NCBI RefSeq assembly: GCF_006345805.1
Contig: NC_042997.1
Span: 187,550,001 to 187,614,000, forward strand
Source of the DNA: Octopus sinensis
Lineage: Eukaryota
DNA length: 64,000 nt
Direction: 5' to 3'
Position numbers and translations under genes: made by a program. Under the pieces are notes generated by a model. The model saw only the letters and a program-made list of their open reading frames with translations, was not told the DNA's origin and did no database searches. Shown piece by piece: positions 31 to 41,616 of this stretch (positions within the stretch are counted from its first letter, which is position 1; every line of letters begins with the position of its first letter).

Positions 31-235
31 TCATCATCATCATTTAACATCCCTGTTCGATGTTGGCTTGGGTTGGGAAGATCCACTAGATCCAAAGACT
101 TCATTCCAGTATTTGCTTTGGCTTGATCTCTACAGCTGGATGCCCTTCCTAATGCCAGCCAGTTTCCAGCATATACTGGGTTGCTTTTTTTGTGCTACTA
201 GTACTAGTGAGGTCATTGTGCAGCTTGCAAGATTA
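31..235 (-). mobile_element. Family A repeat (RTE-type LINE 3' UTR or RTE-dependent SINE), old degraded copy
   Basis: (CAT)n tail, then tttaacatcc and the core ctacagctggatgcccttcctaatgcc shared with other family A copies. Confidence 0.6.
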
Positions 236-914
236 TGAAACCTGAGACAGGAGATGAGAGTAGCTTTATGCCAAGAGATGAGGTGTAAAAGTATGAGAGT
301 AGGAGTGATGAGCAAGTCCTTATCGAGGATCTATGTGGCTATTCACATTTAGAAGAGAGAATGAGATTGCCAGGTGACTCCACAAGGTATGAGGGGAATG
401 GAGGTCAGTGGGGATAGAAGAACCAGGAGTGTGGGCTGGGATTTGCAAAGAGTGTATGGGAAGCAAGAGTTAGAGGTAGGCAGCAACTGTAAAGATTGGT
501 TAGGGTTCAAGAGTGGATATAGAGAGTAATGTATAAGGGGTAGGAGATGACCAAGGAGTGTAGAAGAGAGATGGGGAAGTTGTAGGGTAGTATGAGTAAA
601 GAAGATACAGTTGGCAGGGAGGAGCACGAGTGAGAGATAACATGTAATTGGGTAGGCTGCAGAAGTTGGGAGACAGGGGCCGGTGTAGTGCACGAAGAGA
701 GATAATTTAATGATTCAGTAGGGGAAAGGAGAGCAAATGATCAATGTGGTTCGTGGGCAACAGCTAACAAGTAATAAACAGTTCCAGGTAGCAAGAAAAA
801 AAAAACAAAATGGTAGTGAGAGTGATCATGAGTGGGTGGTAGGGGTGGGAATATCAGGAGATTGGATAAGGTACCCATTTGTGTATATATGTACATGCAG
901 TGCTTCCAAGTCAC

Positions 915-1330
915 TTCTACAGAGATGGATCTTCTCCAGGCCTTCATATCATCAGACATCCTTGTCCTTTGTCATCCGCTCCATAACATTCAGGGATCTG
1001 AGGTCAGCCTTCATCATCATATCATCCTGGGTCTTCCTTCCACAAATTCTAACCTTATTAAATGATTGACACTTCTTTCTACAGGTGTCCTCATCCATAT
1101 GCATCACATGTCCATATGAGTGCAACCTTCTTTCTTGTGCACTATATCTGATTCTTCTTATGCCCAGTTTTTCTCTCAGCACATTTATACTACGTCATTC
1201 ATGCACACCCAACATTCTTTCCAGTCTGCTCACATCCTCTGCATTCAAGGATCACATCTCTCTATCAGTTCCAATACATGCATCATACAATCTGCTCTTC
1301 AGTTTCTGGGAAACACCTTTGTTGCCAACG
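915..1330 (-). mobile_element. RTE-clade LINE, ORF2 C-terminal relic
   Basis: Minus-strand translation LREKLGIRRIRYSAQERRLHSYGHVMHMDED...MKADLRSLNVMERMTKDKDV matches the RTE ORF2 C-terminus pattern (RRLRWYGHVMRM...DRDVW); stops and frameshifts present. Confidence 0.75.
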
Positions 1331-1338
1331 ACATATAT

Positions 1339-1510
1339 ATAGGTGTAGACGTGGGTGTGTGGTAAGAGGTTTGCTTCACAACCACAATGTTATGGTTTCA
1401 GTTCAAGTATGTGGGACCTTGGGCAAGTGTCTTCTACTATAGCTCCAGGCCAACCAAAGCCTTGTGAAATGATTTGGTGTACAGAAGTTGAAAGAAACCC
1501 ATTGTGCATA
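1339..1510 (+). mobile_element. Family B tRNA-headed SINE (CORE-like segment), 5' half
   Basis: Motif ccttgggcaagtgtcttctactatagc...aaagccttgtga shared with copies at 33434, 49169, 49935, 54760; ends in a (CA)n tract. Confidence 0.75.
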
Positions 1511-2149
1511 CACACACACACTCACTCACACACACACACACACACTCACTCACTCACTCACACACACACACACACACACATGTAGGTGGAAAGAAGAAAA
1601 AAAAACACCTTCTGAAGTAAGTAGTTTATAGGCGCAAAATTTCAAAGACAGTTCTTGCAATAGTTCATGTTTGATCATAGCTATGTTCTATATCAGTGCA
1701 TTGTTCATTCTCTCTAATGCCTAGCAGTTAGTTTTTTTTTTTTCATCTTGAGCTTTTGTAGCTGTTGACAAATATGAAAGAAAGTGAAAGAAGTATTTCT
1801 GGACTGTATCCAACCCTCAACAGTTGTACAAAATTATTTGGTTGTGGTAATAGATGGTATGACACTATGTTTCATTGTTGTTGTGTGTTTGTGTATATGA
1901 GTATTGAGATTTTGGCATCATTTAGGTTTACTTATCCTCACTGTTCAAAAATCAAGCCCTTATCAGAAGCCAAAATAGTATTTTCAACTCTTATACTCAG
2001 TTTTTGATAATTATACATTATGTGGCTATGTTTGATGTGGTGCCATGAGACTTGGAAAAAAAAGACGATTCCATAACCATCACTCCGAAATGAGTATGAC
2101 CAAGAAGTGTGTACCATGTTTTTGGAAATTGTATTAGTTAGTGATATAA

Positions 2150-2972: not shown

Positions 2973-4789
2973 TCAGATGAGCTAGTGTAGCATGTTGTGT
3001 ATTATCAGTCATTCAGGCTCAAAATACAAATAGCTGCTCTCTGAGAAAATTCAAGAAAGAACAGGTGAAGAATAGTAAATGAAAAGAAGGAACCAAGGAA
3101 AAACGTATGGAAGGAAGGAAGAAAAGACTTGTGTTTCTTTGATTTGTTACAATAGGAATTAGCATGGTTTGGTGTGATTGATTTAACAGGGAAAGGTTAA
3201 TGTTTGTGAGACTCTCTGCTTAATCTGGAGAGAGGGGTGTTCTCCAATTTTATCATGGAAACTTATCCAGATGCTTGCATTTAGTGAACATTTTTGGATC
3301 CTATTACCAAGCCTGCATTTCCTTGAGCAATCAGTGAATGGAATGCATCATTCTACAATGCCCCACTTGATGGTTTGTAGGGTATTGCTGGCATTCAGAT
3401 GCCAGATATGGCTAGCTAACTTAGTGATTTCCTTATCTACATATCAGAAAGAAAACCTGTGGCTGGCATATATTTTTATAAAGTCACTTTCACATAGACC
3501 AATATACTTTTCCTTTTGTGTATTGTAATTTCATTCAACTTGGGTGACCTCAACTTCATTAACCACCAAGATAAACATACATGACTAGTTGAGTGGGCAA
3601 GTGCCTGTGTCTCTACAGTTACATTTTGGAGTAGGTGCCTGATGTGATTTATGTGTAATAATGTTTTTCATATTGAGGCAGCAGCTGTAAGAAACTGTCA
3701 CTGAGTGTCTATTAAAAATGTTCTTATACCTATAGCTATCCAGGAAATTCTTATCTTTCAAATTTACTCAGAAGAAACTTGCCATGCAGTGAGTCTGAAC
3801 CTAAGACCATGTAATTGAGAAGCGAATTTCCTAACCACAAAGCCATGCCTTTGGCACATTTGAGTAATGACGGATTGCTTTGGATTTTTTTATATCTGAT
3901 CCATCTTTTCCTTTACACCTGTACTGCTCGCCATCACTTTCCTGTCCTTCTGATCACTTCTCATTTAACATCCATCACTTCTCTTATCAATTAATATTAC
4001 CTTCCTTTCATTGCCATGCCACACACACATATACTTGTCTGTTTTACCAGCATTTACTTTATCTCTATCTCTCACCATTCACCACTTGCTGTCACTCTCT
4101 TACTAGCAAAACGATTATATGCATAGATACACACATGCACATACAAACATATATACATCATGATGCTTGAGTATTGAGGGATTGTGTTTGATCTGATTAC
4201 ATCTGATGCACCCATTTCCCTCTCTCTCTCTTGCAAAATACAGCCATCATAAGCGTCTTTCCCCTCTCATGCCTGATTAAAGAGAGTTTGCATTTGATAT
4301 TAAACACTGCCCCAACCTCACCCCAAGTGTCCACAGTCTCTTTAGTATTGCCATTTTGACTACCTATTAGTCATACCCTTTCATACTCATTAACATAATT
4401 TATTCTTCTGTATTGCTAGCTTCTGCTCCCTCTCTTTCAAGTTACTTATTATTGGCATCTATCAGTTACGCTTTTGTCACTAACGATTTCTATGACTACC
4501 AATCACTCACTATCTTTCATCACACCCTGTCAATACTGTTTCTTCCATTACTCCTTTTAGCACTATCTCCCACCTCATACTCTTGTTTTTACCATATTTC
4601 ATCTCTGTTCTTTTTTCTCCTGTTAGTGACATTGCCTTCTGATAGTATGATAGTCAGATGAGCTAGTGTAGCATGTTGTGTATTGTCAGTCATTCAGGCT
4701 CAAAATACAAATGGCTGCTCTCTGAGAAAATTCAATAACGAACAGGTGAAGAAAAGTAAATGAAAAGAAGGAACCAAGCAAAAACTTAT
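2973..4789. repeat. Pair of 136-bp direct repeats (2973-3108 and 4654-4789), about 95% identical
   Basis: Both start tcagatgagctagtgtagcatgttgtgtatt; about 7 substitutions counted by eye; period 1681 bp. Confidence 0.9.
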
Positions 4790-5463
4790 CTGCTCTGTTA
4801 GGGACATTGCCTTCTACAAACAAAGGCAGTGTAGAGCAGTGAGAACCTCTTTTACATTGCAAGGCTGAAGGCATCTGCAACTTGTCCTGGTGTCGTAAAA
4901 ATGCTCCCTATTCACTTTGTAATATGATTGGTGATAGGTAGGGTATCCAGCTGTTGAAACTATGCCAAACTTAATTACATTTAAGTGAAACATGACTCCT
5001 TGACCAGTCCAAAAGGACAAGAACTCCAAATAAGAAGTGACCGTGATATTATTCATATATATCATCATCATCATCGTTGTCATTGTTTATGTCACTTTTC
5101 TCTGCTTGCATGGCTCAGATGTCTCTTCTGTAGCTTAGCATTTCCACTTTTGGGGTCTTTTGTTGTTTCCTTGAAATCAGCCTGACTTCTTGAGATGCCA
5201 TTTTCAGTCTTATTGTTCTACAGATTCCCAAACTTGATAACTCAGTATTTCTTTAGCAAATTAACCTTTTGCAAATGCATCGCATATTTGTAGCAGCTCA
5301 GTCTTCTTTCTCACACATTATGTCTGATTTGTCTCATATCCTATTAATCTCTTGGTTCATTATGTTGTTCATATGCACTAACATTACACAACCAGCAGAG
5401 TATCCTCACCTTATTTCTTTCCAGCCTTGTCACATCCTTTCACCCTCATGTTTTATTATACAC

Positions 5464-5654
5464 TGCCGGTGGCACATGAAAGCACCCACTACACTCTCGG
5501 AGTGGTTGGCGTTAGGAAGGGCATCCAGCTGTAGAAACTCTGCCAGATCAAGATTGGAGCCTGGTGCAGCCAACTGGTTTGCCAGCCCTCAGTCACACGT
5601 CCAACCCATGCAAGCATGGAAAGCGGACGTTAAACGATGATGATGATGATGATG
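5464..5654 (+). mobile_element. Family A repeat, 5'-truncated, (GAT)n tail
   Basis: tgccggtggcacatgaaagcacccactacactctcggagtggttggcgttaggaagggcatccagctgtagaaac...gcggacgttaaacgatgatgatg. Confidence 0.85.
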
Positions 5655-5976
5655 TCCTTAAGGACTTCACTGCCCTTTATTCAGCTCTTTTCACTTTTTC
5701 CACCTCATTCTTTCTCTGGTTGCCATTCTTTCACAAAATCATCTTCTATTGCTAATTTTGTCATCTTCCTAAAGAAAAGCTATCAATTCCTTTTAAGGAA
5801 CTGTCTAAATATTCGAAAGAATTTATTCTATGGATGCTCATAGTACTAATTCTGTTACATGGTAAGTGACAGTTATACAGAGAAAAGACCTAAAGATTTT
5901 TTTTTTACACTATTATAATTTGTTATTTAATATATTTTCATTTTCCCCTTTTTTTTTTTCAATCACTTTTCTCCAG

Positions 5977-6105
5977 CAAAACTAGAAGGCAATTTTTCCG
6001 ATGAACTACCACCTTCAACAACACATTCACAGTCAATAGAAACTACCACTAGAAGTATAGATATTCTTTTACCAAAAGATAAAACTCATGGAGGCAATGA
6101 TCATG
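5977..6105 (+). CDS. DDR2: DDR exon: extracellular juxtamembrane stalk ([43 protein letters not shown])
   Basis: Poly-pyrimidine tract plus CAG at 5974-5976; donor ATG|GTAAGT at 6106; 129 nt, stop-free, phase 1-1, in frame with the TM exon. Too short for the ORF track. Confidence 0.8.
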
Positions 6106-32600: not shown

Positions 32601-35600
32601 AGCTTGGGAAACAGACGGAAAAAACAAGTGAATTCCTGTGTATGTATGTGGTTGTGCAAATTTTCATATCTATCTGCACATTGGTTGTTTACGTTCCTGT
32701 GAATAGCAGTTCAGCTAAAACAAAAATCAATTCAATAAGTATCAGGCTTTAAAATGGTCAAAACATTGCCACAGTGGCTGAAACAAGCAAAAAATTAATG
32801 AAATAAACGAATTAATATGCTTGTATGTGCGTGCTTATGTTTGCAGTTGAATTTGATACAAAGCTTGCTAAAATAATAGTCGTGTAAAAGGACTAAACCA
32901 CTCGATAAATACCACATGGATAAAAGAAGCCGCAAATACTGAGGTCGATATATTCGACTGAAACCCTTCAGGGCTGCAGGTCCACTAATACTGGCATCAA
33001 CTCGCTAAATCATTGACAGAATTTCGCGTTTTATATAAATAAATAAATAAAAAATTGTAAGGGAGATAACTCATAAATTTTTTTTCTTGTGTTAATTCCC
33101 CTGATAAAATATCCAGTAATTTCCTTGAGAAAATGGCAGTTTTGTTTTGTTTTGATTTTAATATAATGTACTTTAATAATAATAATAATTTTTAGCTTGT
33201 TTCATTTTGGTAGTGTAGCATTAATCTTATAACAATAATTATTTTCTTGTCTAGGTTCATTTGTGTGAAGCTGCCCGAATAACCGACTTCTTGGGAGAAG
33301 AATTTGTGGTGACAAGGACAACACCGCGGTCAATGTTAGTTGCTGTAAAAATGCTACGTCCCAGTGCTGATGACAGAGCCAGGTAATTAAATTTGACTCA
33401 CTCTGAACTTTTGTTTTCTCTGTCCCTCATCATTACTCTTTACTCTTTTACTTGTTTCAGTCATTTGACTGTGGCCATGCTGGAGCACCACCCTTTAGTC
33501 GAATAAATCGACCCCAGGACTTATTCTTTGTAAGCCTAGTACTTATTCTATCGGTCTCTTTTGAAGAACCGCTAAGTTACGGGGACGTAAACACACCAGC
33601 ATTGGTTGTCAAGCGATGTTGGGGGGACAAACACAGACACACAAACACATATATATACATATATACGACGGGCTTCTTTCAGTTTCCGTCCACCAAATCC
33701 ACTCACAAGGCTTTGGTCGACCCGAGGCTATAGTAGAAGATACTTACCCAAGGTGCCACGCAGTGGAAATGAACCCGGAACCATGTGGTTGGTAAGCAAG
33801 CTACTTACCATACAGCCACTCCTACACCTATGTTCCTATGTGAACATTTTAAAAAGCCTAAATACAATCTTTAGCTGGAATAACTTTTGCTTAACAACAC
33901 ACATCAGCTGGAGTTACAAGACAGTTTAATGATTGGAATCACTGTATTATATATCAAAATATGAGTAGTTTTAAGGAAATCTAGTCGAAACACTTATGTA
34001 AATCTAATATTTGTAAATTGTGTAAGATGTATCCAGAAGACTTAAGTACTTGGACTCTGAAAGATTTACAAACGATATTAACTGTATTACTTTCTAAAAA
34101 ACATTTGGCTAACTCCTTGTCTAACCACTCTTTCAATGATGGATTTTCACAAAGTACCCTGATTTCCATAGCAGAATTTTCATTCTGATGAACTCTTTTC
34201 TTTTTTATATACCAATGATTAATGAATTTCACAATCTGGTATTCACAATTCTCTAAGCTAAAGGTCACAGATTTATCAGCTCCATCGACATTAAATGATA
34301 CATCACGAAAGTTATATATTTATAAAAAAAACAAGTTTTTAACTTTTGGGATTGGGGTGGGTGAATAGATTTATAGAATCTCTGCATCAGGCTTGTAACA
34401 CTCTAACCTCTGTTAATTAAAAAATACTAAAGTACCATACCAGTGTAATCATTGCCAGAACAACAAGCTGGCCTCCGTGCTTGTGGCACATAAAAAACCC
34501 CATTCGAGCATGATCGTTACCTGCATCACCTTACTGGCACTCGTGCTGGTAGCACGTGAAAAAGCATTCGAGTAATTTCATTGCTAGTGCTACTTGACTG
34601 GCTCCTGTGCATGTGGCACATAAAAAGCACCATTTGAGCATGGTCGTTGCCAGTACCGCCTGACTGGCCCTCGTGTTGTTGGTGTTAGGAAGGGCATCCA
34701 GCTGTAGAAACTCTGCCAGATCAGATTGGAGTCTGATGCAGCCATCTGGTTTGCCAGACCTCAGTCAAATCGTCCAACCCATGCTAGCATGGAAAGCAGA
34801 TGTTAAACGATGATGATGGTGACTAAAACTTCCAATTCACTCCAGAACTAATTTCACCTTTTTTTAATTTTAATTTCATCCTAATGATTGTGTTTCTGTT
34901 TACAACACATCACATCCATTGTTTGTTTTTATGTAGCATATGATATGGTTCTGACCACTGCTAACATTAGCATCATTTAGTTGTTGCAGTATAACCTCTC
35001 TACAGCAAAGACATTTGTTCCTGTCCATCTATCACACTTCTCATCACCTGGCATACAGCTACCTCCCTCAGTACTATACCCCATTCAATTGTCTTGCAAA
35101 TTACTTGATGACCTTACTGGTGTTTGGTGCCAGTCCCCTTTGTAAAGTACTTGGCTTTCAGAAGGGCATCCAACTATGCCAAAGCAAACATTGGATCTTG
35201 ACAACAGTTCTCAGGCTCAACAACTTTTGTTGAAACATTCAACCCATGCCAGCATGAAAATCAGATTTTAAGTAGTAATTATAGATTGTAACAACTCACA
35301 TTTGATCAATCTCAACAATAACCTTTTGTCACCATTCAGCTAATTATCTCAGCTCAAAGACACATTGTTCCTATTGGTTTTTAATACTGCCATTCTTGTA
35401 ATCATCATTGTTTATATTATTAGTATGTGCTATGTTTTCTCTTTGAGTAAATTAAAATATGAACCCTTCTTTCATTAAGCAGAAGCATTCCTTAATAACG
35501 TGGAGTTACTTCTGCAAAAAAATATCTCCTCACCAAATAAATTATATATATGTATATTTGCTGTTAATTCCTAATAAAATATTTGTTTTAATTCAGAGCT

Positions 35601-36372
35601 GATTTTCACAAAGAGATCAAGATTATGTCACAGCTTAAAGACCCAAACATAGTTCGTGTACTTGGAGTCTGCACACAAGAAGAACCATTATGTATGATTG
35701 TCGAATATATGAAATATGGAGACCTCAATCAATTTATCTTGGAACATGTCCCTGAAAGTCCTGTGGCTGCTGCAACCAATGCTAAGACAATGAGGTAAAT
35801 ACTAAAATCAGATTTTATAACAACATTTTACAAATGCATGTGTATTTTATCTTATATGTTAATGTTAATAATTATATTATTTTTATTATTATTATCATTA
35901 TTTTAAACATAAAACAAAACAACAGGGAAATGAAGCAAAAAATTTCTACTTTCTTGTTATTTTACAATAACTCTACAAATATTTCCATAATTCTGAATTT
36001 TATTAAGTATTTGAACTAATATGCATCAGCATATGATACTAGATATTGGATTGTAACTAGCTAAGTATATATAGGTAGTTAGGATTTACCCTCACAACCT
36101 ATATATATATATAATTTTAAAATAGGATAAAATCTTTATAAGAATTTATCAAGTAGTTAGCATGAAAAACCTCATAAGAGAAAAAAAACCCATCAATTTT
36201 TTTCTTTTAAATGTATTCATTTTTATTTAAAATAAATAAATAAATATATATATATATATATATAAAAAATTTAATTAGAGGGTGAGTAACCTCATGAAGG
36301 GATGGTTTCATCCAAGGAAATACTGGTTCAATACCTAGTATTTTGGGGGAATAAATTTATTTAAAATAATAG

Positions 36373-36411
<39 letters not shown>

Positions 36412-39400
36412 TTAATTAGAGGGTGAGTAAACCTCATGAAGGGATGGTTTCATCCAAGGAAATACTGGTTCAATACCTAGTATTTTGGGGGAATAAATTT
36501 ATTTAAAATAATAGGTGTATATATATATATATATATATATAATTACATTATATAAAAGGGCTTAGTAAAATAAATTACTTTGCCGCATACTGAACTCATT
36601 AGAAATAGTAGCTAAAAAAACTTTTTTAAAACTATTTCTAATACTTAAAGAAAACCTCTCTCATATAGTGTTTGCTCAATTCAACTCACGAAAGTATGGG
36701 GGTAAAGACATTAAAAAATCAAATGCAAAGGTTATTTGAGAACGTACGTTTCAAGATTAGTCAACTCGACATTTCTATCATCAGCTCAGAACTCCTTGGT
36801 TTGGATTTGAAAACACTGAAAGTGGGAGCATACCCTTTCGGCTTCTTATCGCTTCTGAAGATTTGCTCGAAACTAACAGTGCCAGCAAACTCAAATATGC
36901 AAGCGAAGAATTTCTGCTCTCCCCTTTCCACCCTCAATTGTTGAAATTATAATTCATCTCTCTCTATTTAATGCCTCGGATTTTACCGAAAAAGCATAGT
37001 GTTTACTGATTTTAACCCACGCTGGTGGAAAGGGGAGAGCAGAAATTCTTCGCTTGCATATTTGAGTTTGCTGGCACTGTTAGTTTCGAGCAGATCTTCA
37101 GAAGCGATAAGAAGCCGAAAGGGTATGCTCCCACTTTCAGTGTTTTCAAATCCAAACCAAGGAGTTCTGAGCTGATGATAGAAATGTCGAGTTGACTAAT
37201 CTTGAAACGTACGTTCTCAAATAACCTTTGCATTTGATTTTTTAATGTCTTTACCCCCATACTTTCGTGAGTTGAATTGAGCAAACACTATATGAGAGAG
37301 GTTTTCTTTAAGTATTAGAAATAGTTTTAAAAAAGTTTTTTTAGCTACTATTTCTAATGAGTTCAGTATGTGGCAAAGTAATTTATTTTACTAAGCCCTT
37401 TTATATAATGTAATAATTTGAATTCGCCTTAAATGGTCCCTTTGCATACTGAATACTTGGTGAAATTGATTAATAATTAATTAATTTTACCCTCAATTGT
37501 TGAAATATATATATATATATATAAAAACATATAGTTTATATTTATTTAAAAGAAGAAAAGAAAATGGAGATTAGGAAGTTCATAATTGTTTATTATTAAC
37601 AGCAAATTGGTCATCTTCACTTACAGCCATTTCAATTATTAATACTCAATAAACATTAAATTTACATTTATGTGACATGAGCACAATATCATCAGAGGAA
37701 AAAAGATGTATATTTGGATGTTATGTGTGTGCTTATGAATTCATTTTAGCAGACTGAATGTTGTGTGTGTGTGTGTGCATATATATATATTTATATATGA
37801 AATAATGTTTCTTTATGTTATATTTTTTTAAGGAATATATCAGCTCTAACTGAACCTACATGATGTATTCCTTTCTGTCATATCTATGTCTCATTTACCA
37901 GGTTGTGCTTCATACTTTTTCTCTCACATTGCTTTCTTCTGGAGCTTCATCTCAGTTTCCATGAATCTTCAAGCATTCAAACAGATCATTGACTCTGTTA
38001 ATCTTACCCTGTTATTCTTTACTCAGGGACTGCACCACAGCAATTTAAAGATAAATCTAAGAATGTATAATATGCTGCCTGTTAAAACGGTGTGGTAACT
38101 AAGAGATGGTCAAGGAAAGCCAACTATTTCATCAAGATCATTCAATTACTTAATGAATATCCCATATGCTTCATCATGAATGCAGACAATGTTGGCTCCA
38201 GGCAGATGCAGACCATCTGTATGTCACTCAGGGACCATGCAGTTGTCCTCATGGGTAAAAACCACAATGATGAAGAAGGTCATAAGAGGTCATTTGGAGC
38301 ACAATGCAGCCCTTGAAAGGTTGCTACCACATATTAAGAACAATGTTGGTTTTGTGTTCACTTTGGCTGATATCAGGGATAGATTGACGAATAACAAGGT
38401 AAAAACTCCTGCTCTTGTTGGTGCTGTTACTCCGTGTCATGTGTTGATACCTGCTCAAAATACAGCTCTTGGTCCTGAAAAAACTTCTTTCTTCCGAGCT
38501 TTGTCTATCCGAACAAAAATCTCCACTGGTACTATTGAAATCTTGAATGATATCTGTAATATCGTTTGGTTATTCAATATAGCAAGGGAATCCTTGAGTT
38601 GTCTCCCTTGTTTGTTTGGGTTTTTTTTTTTTTTTTTATATATTTGGCACTGTAGACAACAGAAGTTTCTCTAGTACTCTTCCTGATTCTTTCCAATTTG
38701 CCACTATAGAAGAAGAGTAACAAATATCGAAATAAATGAAAACAGTAAACAAATTGTTTCCATATATGAAATACATTCAATGTTTCTAAAATTTAAAGAA
38801 AATACCCAGAAAATATTCAAAAAAACATTTACTGATTGAAAGTGGATGGTAATGTTGTACAATATTGAAGTGAACTGAAAGCTGGATTTCAACAGCTAAA
38901 AAGACTGACTATAATCAGATAGATGATCAGGAAGATTGAATACAAATGAGATGATAAATTTAGAAACTAGGATCTCGCAGGTTAACACAAAATAGAAATC
39001 ATCTACCTCAACTTCATCATCATCATTATCGTTTAACGTCCGTTTTCCGTGCTAGCACGGGTTGGACGGTTCGACCGGGGTCTGGGAAGCCAGGGGCTGC
39101 TCCAGGCTCCAGTCTGATCTGGCAGAGTTTCTACGGCTGGATGCCCTTCCTAACGCCAAGCACTCCGCGAGTGTAGTGGGTGCTTTTTACGTGCCACCTG
39201 CACAGGTGCCGGGGAGAAGTCCGGCATCGGCCACGATTGGTTGGAGCTTTTAACGTGCCACCGGCACGGAAGCCAGCCAAGGCGGCGCTGGCAACGGCCA
39301 TGTTCGGATGGAACTTCATCATAATTATTTAACATCCATTTTCCATTCTGGCTTGGGTTAAAATCAATAACTCGACTGTTACAATTTCATAAAGCTAAAA

Positions 39401-41616
39401 TGATGATTATTCATTCATTTTTTTTTACATTTATAATTTAACATAAACTTGTATTATTTCTTTCAGTTATTCAAACTTGTCATCAAATATTTCATTTGAA
39501 TTTACAAATACTTTGTTTCGTATTTCATTCTTCATATCATTTTCTATGTTTTAAATTTCCCATTTCCCTTTTCAGCTATGGTTGTTTAATCTTCATGGCG
39601 TCACAGATTGCATCAGGAATGAAATACCTCGAGTCCCTGAATATGGTCCATCGTGATCTGGCCACAAGGAATTGCCTTGTGGGCCACAACTACTGCATCA
39701 AGATCTCTGACTTTGGCATGAGCAGGAGTCTTTATAGTGCAGATTATTACAGGATAGAGGGAAGAGCTGTCTTACCCATCCGATGGATGGCCTGGGAAAG
39801 CATTCTCTTGGTATGTTGCTTAAGAACCTTCGTCTTTTACATGTTAACTAAATATTCTCTTATTCTTTTATTTGTTTCAGTCATTTGACTGTGGCCAAGC
39901 TGGAGTACCACCTTGCAGGATTTTAGTTCGAACAACTCAACCCCCAAGACTTATTTTTTTTAAGCCTAGTACTTACTCTATCAGTCTCTTTTACCAAATC
40001 GCTAAGTTACGGGAATGTAAACACACCAACATCAATTGTCAAGTAGTGATGGTGGGACAAGCACAAAGAGACACACACACACACACATATGAATTCTGTA
40101 GATAAGGTCAGAACAGTACTGGAGGAGTATTTTTCATCACAGACCAGTGAATTTTGGAAGAGGGGCCTTGCAAGTCTACCAGAGAGATGGAAGAGCATTG
40201 TAGAAGGAGTATAAAAAAACCACATTATTTATGGGATGACCCAATAGAAGACACTTGCCCAAGGTACCACAAAATTGTGAATCCAGAACTGAATCCGGAA
40301 CCATGTGATTGGAAAGCAAACTTCTTACACATAGCCACACCTATGTAGTGTTTAAAATCACTCCATTTGTTTGAAGTTCATTAACAATGAAACATTTAAT
40401 AGCTGTTTTGTATGAAGGTTTCACAGCCATTACACAAATTTGATATGTGGAAAAATCAGTATAGTCAATGTATTGCAATGCAGTTTATTCATTGACAGGA
40501 TTCCAGCAGCTAGTTAATTAATAATAGTTAGAATAATTTTTGAATAATCCTAAATTTAAATATTACTGTTTAACCCTTTAACATTCAGATTACTCTAGCA
40601 AATGTAAAAGTTATTTAATAGTTACTAATCACTATGACCCGGCAATGCCAGGTCATAGTGCTAGTGCATGCATATACAGCTGTGTGCGTGCGCACATACA
40701 CGCAAGTACTGTCCAAATCTCCGACCAATCACATACAGCTAGCTGACATTCAATTGGCGTATCGAGTTTTGGGCATTTTGATTGGGTTTTGGATAGAAAA
40801 TTCACAAAAAAGTGACTTCTATTGATTTTTTTAATGGCTTTGCGGGGTGACTGGGGAAATGTGAAGATGTGCACGACCACCCTTGGATGGTTTTGAATGA
40901 CCATAGAAAGTGCAAGCCCTTTAACTGAAAAATTGTGGGTTTGCATAAAGGACATGCACACACACACATACACAGACATTTGCCGTTTATATATAGAGAG
41001 AGAGATTTAATCATTTTGAACTCCTCGTGCATTGTCTTGTAGCTTTGAGATTTCAATGACGTGATTGTTTATTTTTAAAGTGACATTGTAGGTTAGGTGT
41101 GAGAGGCCAGATCTGTCAGGTCTGAACATAAAACAGGCAGAACATTTGGGACTGATATGGCCAGTTTGAATACTAAAGGGTTAATCTTGGGAACCAGAAG
41201 GAAATTATTGTATTTTCAACATTACTCGTTTGTAAGTAAATATTCTGTTCATAAAATGTTGTTGTTTCTCTTTCCTAAAACAGGGCAAGTTCACGACTAA
41301 GAGTGATGTGTGGTCATTTGCTGTAACACTGTGGGAAATATTAACATTTGCAAAAGAACAGCCATATGAAGCGTTAACTGATGAACAAGTCATTGAAAAT
41401 GCTGGACATTATTACCGAAATGATGGACGCCAGGTTTATCTTCCACAACCGCCCAATTGCCCAAAGGAAATTTATGATTTAATGCGTGAGTGCTGGAACC
41501 GACAGGAGAGTGAACGTCCGTCGTTTAGGGAAATTCACATGTTTCTTCAACGGAAAAATATGGGGTATAACCCAAAGGATGAAAAAATGAATCAAATAAA
41601 AGTGCCCATCTGCTGA
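5977..41616 (+). CDS. DDR2: Discoidin domain receptor tyrosine kinase (DDR2-like), 5'-partial, 7 coding exons in window
   Basis: Exons join in frame (phases 1,1,1,0,2,2,0; 1775 nt) with AG acceptors and GT/GC donors. Contains a TM helix, DDR-type juxtamembrane motifs ([18 protein letters not shown]) and intact kinase motifs [43 protein letters not shown]. Invertebrate Ddr is a co-orthologue of DDR1/DDR2, so the symbol is approximate. Confidence 0.95.
6280..6349. repeat. Pure (AT)n microsatellite, about 35 units
   Basis: Uninterrupted AT run. Confidence 0.98.
6977..7095 (+). mobile_element. Family B SINE 5' fragment, degraded
   Basis: ggttcagtcccactgcatggtaccttgggcaagcatctcctatcatagcctc. Confidence 0.6.
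7356..7578 (-). mobile_element. Family C tRNA-headed SINE, full length, with 16-bp TSD
   Basis: B-box-like GTTCAAATTCC on the minus strand; TSD AATCTCCACAGTATTT at 7340-7355 and 7579-7594; homologous copies at 10534 and 58208. Confidence 0.9.
8815..9243 (+). CDS. DDR2: DDR exon: transmembrane helix ([28 protein letters not shown]) and proximal cytoplasmic juxtamembrane region
   Basis: Acceptor ttttccttctAG at 8813-8814; lies in ORF 8793-9353; 3' end placed at CAG|GCAAGT (GC donor, phase 1 matches next exon). The 3' boundary is less certain than the 5'. Confidence 0.85.
10534..10737 (+). mobile_element. Family C SINE
   Basis: gttctgagttcaaattccgccaaggtcgactttgcctttcacctttcggggtcaataaattaagtaccag...gggtagtaaagaaata. 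Confidence 0.85.
13602..13865 (-). mobile_element. Family D tRNA-headed SINE with 12-bp TSD
   Basis: A/B-box-like TAGTGGTTAG and GGTTTCAATTCC on the minus strand; TSD TCATATAAATAT at 13590-13601 and 13866-13877; near-identical to the copy at 52039. Confidence 0.9.
14433..15544. repeat. 1.1-kb compound TA/TG/CA microsatellite with higher-order minisatellite units
   Basis: Almost entirely alternating purine-pyrimidine; produces the spurious Y/I/M/C/V ORFs. Confidence 0.97.
16370..16720. repeat. Degenerate CA/TA-rich simple repeat
   Basis: Runs of cata, caca and tata. Confidence 0.8.
17790..18551 (-). mobile_element. Tc1/mariner (maT/DD37D-like) transposon relic, internally deleted
   Basis: Minus strand gives N-terminal [18 protein letters not shown] and [24 protein letters not shown], then directly C-terminal [16 protein letters not shown] (SPDLNPLD motif) and [13 protein letters not shown]...GIFVE. 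One TIR-like end at about 18520-18551 followed by TA; the second TIR was not found. Confidence 0.7.
27376..27675 (-). mobile_element. tRNA-headed SINE (family D-related) with 13-bp TSD and (AAC)n tail
   Basis: Minus-strand TAGTGGTTAGAGC and GGTTCGAATC; TSD AATAAAATAATGT at 27363-27375 and 27676-27688. Confidence 0.88.
28049..28371 (+). CDS. DDR2: DDR exon: distal juxtamembrane region to kinase Gly-rich loop (DSRDYAVP...LGEGQFGE)
   Basis: Acceptor cattccAG at 28047-28048; donor GAG|GTAAGA at 28372; ORF 28000-28449. Confidence 0.95.
30560..31950 (-). mobile_element. Old RTE (BovB-like) LINE relic: APE endonuclease C-terminus plus RT fragment
   Basis: Minus-strand [52 protein letters not shown] (IDY...TDH pattern), then QTDGRIF near 30790; many stops, frameshifts and large deletions. 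Confidence 0.6.
32085..32260 (+). mobile_element. Family B SINE, highly degraded 5' half
   Basis: ttgcaaccacatggtttcagg...gatggaaactgtgcagaagcctgt resembles family B. Confidence 0.45.
33255..33382 (+). CDS. DDR2: DDR exon: kinase subdomain II (VHLCEA...[17 protein letters not shown])
   Basis: Acceptor ttttcttgtctAG at 33253-33254; donor CAG|GTAATT at 33383; 128 nt, phase 0-2. Not in the ORF track. Confidence 0.95.
33434..33830 (-). mobile_element. Family B SINE, full length, internal microsatellite, (AAAGAGT)n tail
   Basis: Complete match in layout to the + strand copy at 54760-55160. Confidence 0.9.
34451..34820 (+). mobile_element. Family A repeat with four upstream 55-65-bp repeat units and (GAT)n tail
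   Basis: Units end in ggcac(a/g)taaaaag; core ttaggaagggcatccagctgtagaaac; tail gttaaacgatgatgatg. Confidence 0.85.
35597..35794 (+). CDS. DDR2: DDR exon: kinase alphaC and hinge ([46 protein letters not shown]...)
   Basis: Acceptor ttttaattcAG at 35595-35596; donor GAG|GTAAAT at 35795; 198 nt, phase 2-2. Confidence 0.95.
36264..36518. repeat. Tandem duplication of a 113/114-bp unit bounded by (TA)n tracts
   Basis: Copies 36264-36376 and 36405-36518 are identical except for one extra A (gagtaacc vs gagtaaacc). Confidence 0.95.
36542..37414. repeat. Long near-perfect inverted repeat: arms 36542-36932 and 37024-37414 (391 bp each), 91-bp spacer
   Basis: Base-by-base comparison shows two mismatches (36585/37371 and 36863/37093); mirror ORFs 36672-36944(+) and 37012-37284(-) share their first 87 aa. 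Confidence 0.97.
38092..38554 (+). pseudogene. RPLP0: Processed pseudogene of 60S acidic ribosomal protein P0 (uL10), N-terminal half only
   Basis: [32 protein letters not shown]...[46 protein letters not shown]...[17 protein letters not shown]...GTIEILND. Intronless, +1 frameshift at about 38263, 3-codon deletion (KED equivalent), no intact start, homology stops near codon 158. Confidence 0.93.
39021..39311 (-). mobile_element. Family A repeat, young CpG-rich copy, 5'-truncated, with 11-bp TSD
   Basis: TSD AACTTCATCAT at 39010-39020 and 39312-39322; CpGs retained. Confidence 0.9.
39576..39810 (+). CDS. DDR2: DDR exon: catalytic and activation loops ([36 protein letters not shown])
   Basis: Acceptor tttcccttttcAG at 39574-39575; donor TTG|GTATGT at 39811; ORF 39496-39888. 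Confidence 0.97.
39863..40345 (-). mobile_element. Family B SINE interrupted by a mariner fragment (SINE 3' half 39863-40088, 5' part 40244-40345)
   Basis: Both halves match family B; the central segment of the family is replaced by unrelated sequence. Confidence 0.75.
40089..40235 (+). mobile_element. Mariner (DD34D-type) transposase C-terminal fragment
   Basis: [41 protein letters not shown] (40089-40214) fits the mariner C-terminal pattern FFxS...F..GIxxLPERWxKV. Confidence 0.7.
40574..41180. mobile_element. piggyBac-type MITE
   Basis: TTAA at 40570-40573 and 41181-41184 flank TIRs CCCTTTAACATTCA / TGAATACTAAAGGG (2 mismatches in 14). Confidence 0.75.
40625..41005 (-). mobile_element. 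Non-autonomous Helitron nested in the piggyBac MITE
   Basis: Minus-strand 5' A|TC(TC)nTATATATAAACGGC at 41005; 3' palindrome CACTATGACC...GGTCATAGTG then degenerate TTAG|T at 40625; A|T insertion site, no TSD. Confidence 0.7.
41284..41616 (+). CDS. DDR2: DDR terminal coding exon ([12 protein letters not shown]...QIKVPIC*)
   Basis: Acceptor CAG at 41281-41283; stop TGA at 41614-41616; ORF 41308-41616. Confidence 0.97.

Follow-up and report, generated by a model that had tools for sequence, protein, structure and literature searches.

Why an intron of a tyrosine kinase gene of Octopus sinensis should contain a palindrome with two almost perfectly complementary arms of 391 nt is the question raised by the locus analyzed here. 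The locus lies in a window of 64,000 nucleotides (NCBI RefSeq assembly GCF_006345805.1, contig NC_042997.1; C1:187550001-187614000 in the 2.72-Gb genome of 13,516 contigs that was searched), and the host gene is a DDR-like kinase gene. An earlier note, made from the letters of the window alone, had read the palindrome as a hairpin of very recent origin in the pre-mRNA of this gene. Our results point to a different answer: with a probability of about 0.65, the palindrome is one young insertion of a non-autonomous 559-bp element into a (TA)n microsatellite, produced by retrotransposition of the type known from Penelope-like elements (PLEs). The narrower statement, that it is an insertion of a repeat family and that its inverted shape arose at integration, appears highly probable.

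The palindrome and the 559-bp repeat

The two arms (36542-36932 and 37024-37414 of the window) are complementary at 389 of 391 positions at the best symmetry axis, in which position i is paired with position 73956-i, and a scan of the palindrome found no more than 127 complementary positions in any other pairing register. They are separated by a spacer of 91 nt (36933-37023). A repeat finder extended the arms to 409 nt at 98%, because its alignment spilled slightly into the flanks. The only mismatches between the arms are G36585:T37371 and T36863:G37093, both of which are G·U pairs on the plus strand; the palindrome of 391 bp with two mismatches, both G-U on the sense strand, had thus been described exactly. 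Folding of the plus-strand RNA from 36518 to 37526 predicted a single unbroken stem of ~394 bp (minimum free energy, -747 kcal/mol), in agreement with the ~390-bp duplex with a 91-nt loop that had been considered possible. The palindromic structure far exceeds what is expected by chance, whereas the restriction of its mismatches to wobble pairs, with only two sites, does not.

A search of the genome with the left arm returned 41 full-length matches that were at least 99% identical and were located on many chromosomes and contigs. Seven copies on other chromosomes (701 bits) differed from the left arm by one base, whereas its own partner arm (697 bits) differed by two, and therefore the identity of the arms reflects the youth of a family and not a recent duplication in situ. 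The flanks of the copies place the arm within a unit of 559 bp. A 30-mer of this unit occurs 1,712 times in the genome, and the motif of one of its 3' ends (End A) followed by ten A/T bases occurs at 1,439 sites, with about 88 of the 100 sites listed running into (TA)n. The family should comprise at least about 1,300 insertions, and about two in three of these should be hairpins that are long and near-perfect. Judged by its sequence, the unit is a young, non-coding, dispersed mobile repeat. A trimer of the unit contained no open reading frame (ORF) of more than 91 amino acids (aa), and the 82-aa ORF of the unit had no homologue among 5.8 billion proteins. No paper that describes this octopus family was found in the literature.

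The anatomy of the insertion in the window can be read against this unit. On its left, a (TA)12 remnant of the target (36518-36541, read from the sequence) is followed by the left arm, a 5'-truncated copy on the minus strand that runs from unit ~465/470 to 77 at 36542-36932, with the second type of 3' end (End B, ...CCCTTTTATATAATGTAAT) facing outward to the left; blastn placed unit 77-470 on 36932-36539 at 99.2%. The inversion junction (36930-36947, plus strand) consists of an ACC microhomology at 36930-36932 and then CTCAATTGTTGAAAT, which is unit 545-559, so that 36933-36947 represent the 3'-terminal 15 nt of a preceding unit in forward orientation. The 27-mer across this junction (36921-36947), CCCCTTTCCACCCTCAATTGTTGAAAT, has a single occurrence in the whole genome. 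A complete forward unit (1-559; plus strand, blastn) follows at 36948-37506 and terminates in End A (...TTTTACCCTCAATTGTTGAAAT). Within it, unit 77-467 at 37024-37414 is the right arm, which pairs with the inverted copy around the symmetry axis, and unit 468-559 at 37415-37506 is an unpaired extension of 92 nt that is present on the End-A arm only and is comparable to the one-sided 'tail' of PLEs. An (AT)n remnant of the target (37505-37523, read from the sequence) closes the insertion. Because of this layout, the 91-nt loop is made up of the 15 nt of the preceding unit plus unit 1-76, and pairing does not continue beyond 37414, since the inverted copy terminates there in the alternative 3' end, End B.

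The two mismatches can be explained in the same way. Compared with a consensus of the young subfamily (depth, 36-72 sequences), the only change in the right arm and its forward unit is at unit 424 (window 37371), a C>T in a CpG, and the only private change in the left arm is at unit 146 (window 36863), which is C>T when read on the plus strand. Two private C>T changes lie on the same strand, and therefore both appear as G·U on that strand. Given two transitions, the chance that both give wobble pairs is 1/4, in keeping with the earlier caution that the bias might be fortuitous, and no selection for pairing at these sites is evident from the sequence. Two private changes in about 968 bp of insertion, set against an octopus repeat-landscape calibration in which a Jukes-Cantor distance of 0.09 corresponds to ≈25 million years (PMC13282606), suggest that the insertion is about half a million years old; the Poisson range of this estimate is very wide, and since the consensus drew on the copies most similar to the arm, it is no more than approximate. 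The very recent origin proposed before thus stands as far as the youth of the insertion is concerned (one consensus difference per arm), whereas a recent duplication in situ does not, since closer copies are found elsewhere.

Rules followed by the insertions of the family

The unit was mapped onto 51 loci, which correspond to 44 independent insertions. Their outer ends were always either End A (unit 554-559) or End B (unit 460-475), and their inner ends were scattered over the whole unit, that is, 5' truncation was variable. Units were stacked head to tail in most loci, with 24 of 28 spacings between same-strand neighbours measuring 542-561 bp. An inverted copy was present in 29 of the 44 insertions (66%), always with the 3' ends outward; the other 15 had no inverted arm. 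Opposite-strand neighbours on C1 had the same polarity (14 in the order minus, plus versus 0 in the order plus, minus; two-sided p = 1.2e-4), and every inverted composite among the fetched loci was divergent. The earlier note had pointed to a genome-wide search for other copies and their layout; such copies are numerous, and their recurrent head-to-head arrangement does not agree with a one-off local inversion.

The outer ends of inverted insertions were paired in a strict manner. One End A and one End B were found in 26 of the 27 inverted insertions that could be mapped at both ends, the exception (L034) being A/A, and the probability of this pairing under independent choice of ends is 7e-8. 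In 26 of 27, one arm was 92-94 nt longer at its outer end, corresponding to End A versus End B. B arms were often longer than A arms (L011, L014, L019 and L023). Sequence of the (TA)n type adjoined 37 of 40 composite ends in 20 six-kb loci, truncated ends included, and no poly(A) was present at either end type. Both ends have a similar motif, ATTTTAC..CCCT[CT].., 10-17 nt upstream of the end. The inversion junctions contained 0-7 nt of microhomology or short templated fillers. In old copies, which were 88-93% identical to the consensus, the arms were 96-98.6% identical to each other and had 12-38 derived variants in common; therefore, both arms of a locus were made together from one template.

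Some loci showed further arrangements. At C1:124724629-124727295 (G000), a subfamily whose unit starts with TATAATTAAT and not TATAATTCAT is arrayed as five units on the minus strand, at a spacing of 542-546 bp, and then one unit on the plus strand, again in divergent layout. A sister tandem family with a period of ~600 bp and at least five units, 98-99% identical to one another, occupies positions 3046-6001 of locus L038; its similarity to unit 398-554 of the 559-bp family is 68%, and at this locus it joins a 559-family copy at unit 123, forming a chimeric insertion. In another locus (L026), a B-like end of the sister family adjoins (TA)n. Two loci 865 kb apart, L039 (C1:21703503-21709503) and L040 (C1:22568161-22574161), are mirror images that include a 559-family insertion and unique flanking sequence with identical 182-aa ORFs, and reflect a segmental duplication in inverted orientation or else a stretch that the assembly contains twice.

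The motif of ends A and B was also present in two other (TA)n-adjoining repeats of the window. One repeat end, ...GGATTTACCCTCACAACC at 36085-36113 on the plus strand, passes directly into (TA)n and carries the TTTACCCTC motif of End A; the pattern TTTACCCTC N3-20 ATATATAT occurs twice in the window and 0 times in 100 shuffles. The other, repeat X (36236-36541), comprises exact copies of 112 bp at 36288-36399 and 36430-36541 plus a partial third, has a period of 142 bp that includes a (TA)n block, and contains a B-box-like GGTTCAATACC. Its minus strand ends in ...GGTTTACTCACCCTCTAATTAAATTTTTT beside (AT)n, with a motif resembling that of ends A and B. A 30-mer of X has about 120 genomic copies with at most two mismatches and exact matches only in these two copies, so that in X an older, dispersed repeat has been duplicated locally.

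Origin of the inverted arrangement

Since B arms in many cases exceed the A arms in length, and since A arms reach 92-94 nt past the B end, neither arm copies the other. The arms are therefore independent syntheses, each of which began at the outer end and proceeded inward along a shared external template of a single sense. The same two length relations also rule out a snap-back origin of the second arm as a self-primed hairpin. We propose that a (TA)n target would be cut and that both freed 3'-OH ends would anneal to TA-rich sites of the same single-stranded template, which would most probably be RNA of the element in multimeric or circular form. Priming site A would be GAAAT followed by TATAAT at the boundary between unit positions 559 and 1, and site B would be TTTTATATAATGTAAT at unit ~450-465. 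The two would alternate on a multimer and would be the sole two such sites on a monomer circle, so that two neighbouring primings would be expected to yield one A and one B end. Each end would then be copied inward over a variable distance, giving 5' truncation and head-to-tail units, and the two products would be joined through 0-7 nt of microhomology. The distance from the inner end of the A arm to the B site, tallied over the mapped insertions as a test of twin priming on a linear RNA, was only weakly clustered.

Insertions of PLEs are characterized by a high frequency of 5' truncation, by partial tandems and often by an adjacent inverted 5'-truncated copy, with a tail of 30-40 bp at one end only (PMC8557442; Craig et al., 2021). 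Their bias toward microsatellites is strong, (TA)n being the target of Naiads and of nearly all families of the Hydra clade, and among non-autonomous derivatives, to which MRC1 of Chlamydomonas belongs, insertions consist of several copies arranged head to tail (PMC8557442). The 559-bp family resembles them in its fixed 3' ends, frequent 5' truncation, head-to-tail tandems, inverted 5'-truncated copy at the 5' end and (TA)n bias with unreadable target-site duplications; its extension is likewise confined to one end but has a different length. Its unit, unlike a PLE, is non-coding and measures only 559 bp. Hammerhead ribozymes are found in canonical and Hydra-clade PLEs and are absent in Naiads (PMC8557442); no hammerhead was found in the 559-bp unit, which in this respect is unlike the former and like the latter. 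The strict pairing of an A with a B 3' end is not described in that paper.

The likeliest driver, itself or through a relative, would be a GIY-YIG/reverse transcriptase (RT) element of this genome, represented by a copy at locus L047. Its ORF (L047:153-1460) contains a YVDD motif and matched RVT_1 weakly (E = 0.003), and its C-terminal region matched GIY-YIG with E = 2e-4 (22.1 bits, compared with a Pfam cut-off of 22.6 bits). The homologues are proteins of 450-740 aa encoded on contigs of 2-3 kb; one from a coral bears the name 'GIY-YIG domain-containing' and one from a sea cucumber the name 'reverse transcriptase'. The size and distribution of the homologues possibly fit the Hydra clade. The 3' end of the element has 223 copies in the genome and is followed by TATATATA in 95 of 100 among the matches listed, and neighbouring 3' ends within 5 kb were in the order minus, plus in 13 cases versus 1 in the order plus, minus. 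The target and the head-to-head polarity are the same in this element and in the 559-bp family.

The L047 copy of this Penelope-like element (153-1527, plus strand) is 5'-truncated, has a 43-nt inverted repeat at its 5' end (82-124 and 219-261) and ends about 65 nt past the stop codon at a TA/TG microsatellite. The minus strand of the same locus contains at 3690-5143 an RT fragment (RVT_1) that looks RTE-like and ends in poly(A), followed on the same strand by the tRNA-like head of a short interspersed element (SINE) (..GCAGTGGTTAGA..GGTTCGATTC..), and the 3' end of this SINE (...GATCACGTGATT) adjoins the (TA)n tract that also borders the 559-family insertion. A scan of the genome with the RVT_1 profile gave 60,160 candidates. 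Dong/R4 is the most active long interspersed element (LINE) in O. vulgaris (PMC13282606).

It should be noted that several points weigh against PLE-type retrotransposition. The rules above come from 44 mapped insertions among more than 1,000. The RNA intermediate is hypothetical; poly(A) is absent, and target-site duplications are unreadable inside (TA)n. Scans with Rfam (E <= 1) of the window locus, the tandem-unit loci and the sister family gave no hammerhead or other ribozyme. The one-sided extension measures 92-94 nt versus 30-40 nt for the PLE tail. Comparison of the 559-bp unit and the sister family with one copy of the candidate driver, that of L047, revealed no similarity, the 3' end included. 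Naiad PLEs survive in cephalopods only as old remnants (PMC8557442), whereas the 559-bp family is young and its driver is no more than a candidate. Finally, substitutions among copies were strand-symmetric (A>G 18, T>C 18, C>T 18 and G>A 17); with no excess of A>G over T>C, an ADAR footprint left in the genomic copies by an edited RNA intermediate was rejected. We put forward only tentatively the more specific suggestion that the family may travel as a non-autonomous passenger, undescribed so far and without a ribozyme, of a PLE that targets (TA)n, and that A/B pairing may record PLE integration.

Several known classes of element were also considered. A tRNA-derived SINE was ruled out, since ARAGORN found nothing in 36000-38000 that could represent a tRNA-like head with A and B boxes, and since the unit consensus has T6-T7 runs on both strands that would stop RNA polymerase III. 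A retrozyme was excluded by the absence of a self-cleaving hammerhead from the unit and across tandem junctions in Rfam. No known structured RNA (ribozyme, tRNA or real miRNA) could be recognized; the weak miRNA-type matches, among them MIR1023 with 44.6 bits against a gathering score of 90, are generic to hairpins and (TA)n. Twin priming of LINE-1, reportedly described by Ostertag and Kazazian in 2001, is said to produce 5'-inverted L1 insertions. It resembles the process proposed here in that both target 3' ends prime on one template and the inverted 5' portion is connected to a direct 3' portion by microhomology, with the 3' ends outward. It uses non-overlapping segments of a monomer RNA and leaves poly(A) and target-site duplications, whereas in the 559-bp family the arms overlap in unit coordinates, the units are multimeric, poly(A) is absent and the inverted form is the majority (66%); twin priming of the LINE-1 type was rejected on the absence of poly(A) and the overlap of the arms. 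Foldback and other DNA transposons with long terminal inverted repeats (TIRs) have long inverted arms of tandem subrepeats around a variable center. Compared with foldback elements as they are described, the outer termini of the family differ (A versus B) and its truncated ends adjoin (TA)n directly. Micron of rice, like the family a repeat without coding capacity that is dispersed and occurs specifically within (TA)n microsatellites, is listed as a miniature inverted-repeat transposable element (MITE), a DNA transposon (PMC3812793); the family differs from such an element in its variable 5' truncation, its unique internal junctions and the frequent lack of an inverted arm. A foldback or TIR transposon or a MITE was rejected on the unequal termini, the 15 of 44 insertions without an inverted arm and the separate junction of every locus.

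Among the remaining explanations, a DNA-templated spread of the family is unlikely, in our judgement. Breaks in the fragile (TA)n tracts would be repaired off single-stranded DNA circles of the rolling-circle type, or off existing copies that offer (TA)n homology, and the products joined by microhomology. Such a process would be helped by the self-complementary (TA)n flanks of every copy, and thus of every potential donor; multimers of exact period suit rolling-circle copying, microhomology is present at the junctions, and the lack of poly(A), ribozyme and tRNA-like head together with the symmetric substitution spectrum would be in line with it. However, B ends range over unit 460-475, as expected for TA-rich internal priming and not for an inherited boundary; the A/B rule would not be expected if free ends invaded any (TA)n flank in either orientation; and an RT/GIY-YIG element of the same genome has the same target and polarity. 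Moreover, the ends as read (...GTTGAAAT and ...ATAATGTAAT) lack the 5'-TC and CTRR-3' termini of Helitrons, on which ground a Helitron was rejected, although insertion into AT-rich sequence is compatible with, and not specific to, such elements.

The other explanations treat the palindrome as peculiar to this locus. Template switching during replication could very recently have duplicated intronic DNA in inverted orientation at this site. Such an event would account for arms that differ at 2 of 391 positions and for a junction that is unique in the genome, but it is made very improbable by the same architecture, each time with its own junction, at 29 of 44 mapped loci, by outer ends that are both standard 3' ends of the family adjoining (TA)n, by the seven copies elsewhere that are nearer to the left arm than its partner is, and by the 92-nt extension of the right arm and the 15 nt of a preceding unit, neither of which could be obtained from the left arm. 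The uniqueness of the junction would equally fit an inverted join made while a difficult repeat was assembled, and tandem and inverted PLE structures often trouble assembly (PMC8557442). Yet the composite is about 1 kb long, lies within unique intron sequence on a 213-Mb contig and obeys the same rules of A/B ends, divergent polarity and microhomology as dozens of loci with different junctions, which leaves an artefact hardly any credibility. Just as remote is an RNA element selected for the DDR gene, that is, a regulatory double-stranded RNA (dsRNA) or small-RNA precursor in which mismatches were kept as wobbles. The two G·U pairs on the sense strand and the hairpin-type Rfam matches, weak as these are, could be cited for it; against it, the sites number only two, both are private C>T changes on the plus strand, one of them in a CpG, an outcome within reach of chance, and comparable hairpins are found by the hundred elsewhere. 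The sequence hardly departs from the consensus of the family, and selection has thus had no time to act at this locus.

Host gene and consequences for RNA

Three plus-strand ORF pieces of the window (35592-35798, 39442-39888 and 41236-41616) matched Pfam PK_Tyr_Ser-Thr, and when joined conceptually they matched the kinase domains of DDR2 and DDR1 in PDB with E = 4e-105 and 2e-99, respectively, clearly ahead of every other kinase family (1e-66 for Trk and MuSK). On these matches, the host gene is a DDR-like kinase gene on the plus strand, and the palindrome is intronic. The upstream kinase exon (35592-35794, with Pfam and PDB matches) is ended by a GT donor at about 35794/35795 (GT at 35795), so the palindrome starts ~747 nt downstream of it, and its previous placement ~750 nt 3' of a kinase exon in a sense intron proved correct. 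The next exon, which encodes HRDLATRN...DFG, lies at 39586-39804 (plus strand; approximate bounds from the Pfam-matched stretch). The same intron contains at 38086-38674 (plus strand) a frameshifted sequence similar to ribosomal protein P0/L10, with Pfam Ribosomal_L10 in one frame and RL10P_insert in another, which looks like a processed pseudogene.

The palindrome is an ordinary repeat insertion and neither a locally evolved RNA structure nor a special feature of the DDR gene. As the default product of a mobile family, it is not to be read as a locus-specific regulatory hairpin or as a fragile local inversion. Transcription of the DDR gene would place the insertion in a pre-mRNA, where it would fold into a duplex of ~390 bp and probably become an incidental substrate of ADAR. 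A-to-I editing is directed mainly at young repeats across metazoans, including Octopus bimaculoides, and a role as dsRNA and ADAR substrate is plausible; editing or small interfering RNAs would be a generic expectation for young inverted repeats (PMC9989829). Inverted Alu pairs of mammals are likewise near-perfect inverted young repeats that are able to form long dsRNA, but a pair of the Alu type arises from two independent neighbouring insertions, whereas a pair of the 559-bp family arises from one insertion event.

The family, above all its A/B pairing rule, is a more interesting by-product of this analysis than the palindrome itself. The formation of tandem and inverted PLE insertions at microsatellites is a poorly understood step, for which the family offers a clean natural dataset, as its two alternative 3' ends allow both priming events to be told apart at each locus. 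If the family is indeed a PLE passenger, priming by both target ends at neighbouring TA-rich sites would explain the PLE 'tail' as well as the tandem and inverted structures. In addition, the family makes known a set of intronic inverted repeats in a coleoid that are very long and almost without mismatches and can serve as defined substrates for tests of repeat-directed ADAR editing; analyses of editing must handle copies that are 99-100% identical to one another. Under the same PLE-passenger reading, hundreds of loci able to form ~0.1-1 kb of perfect dsRNA would be present in octopus introns, and would represent a substantial ADAR load.

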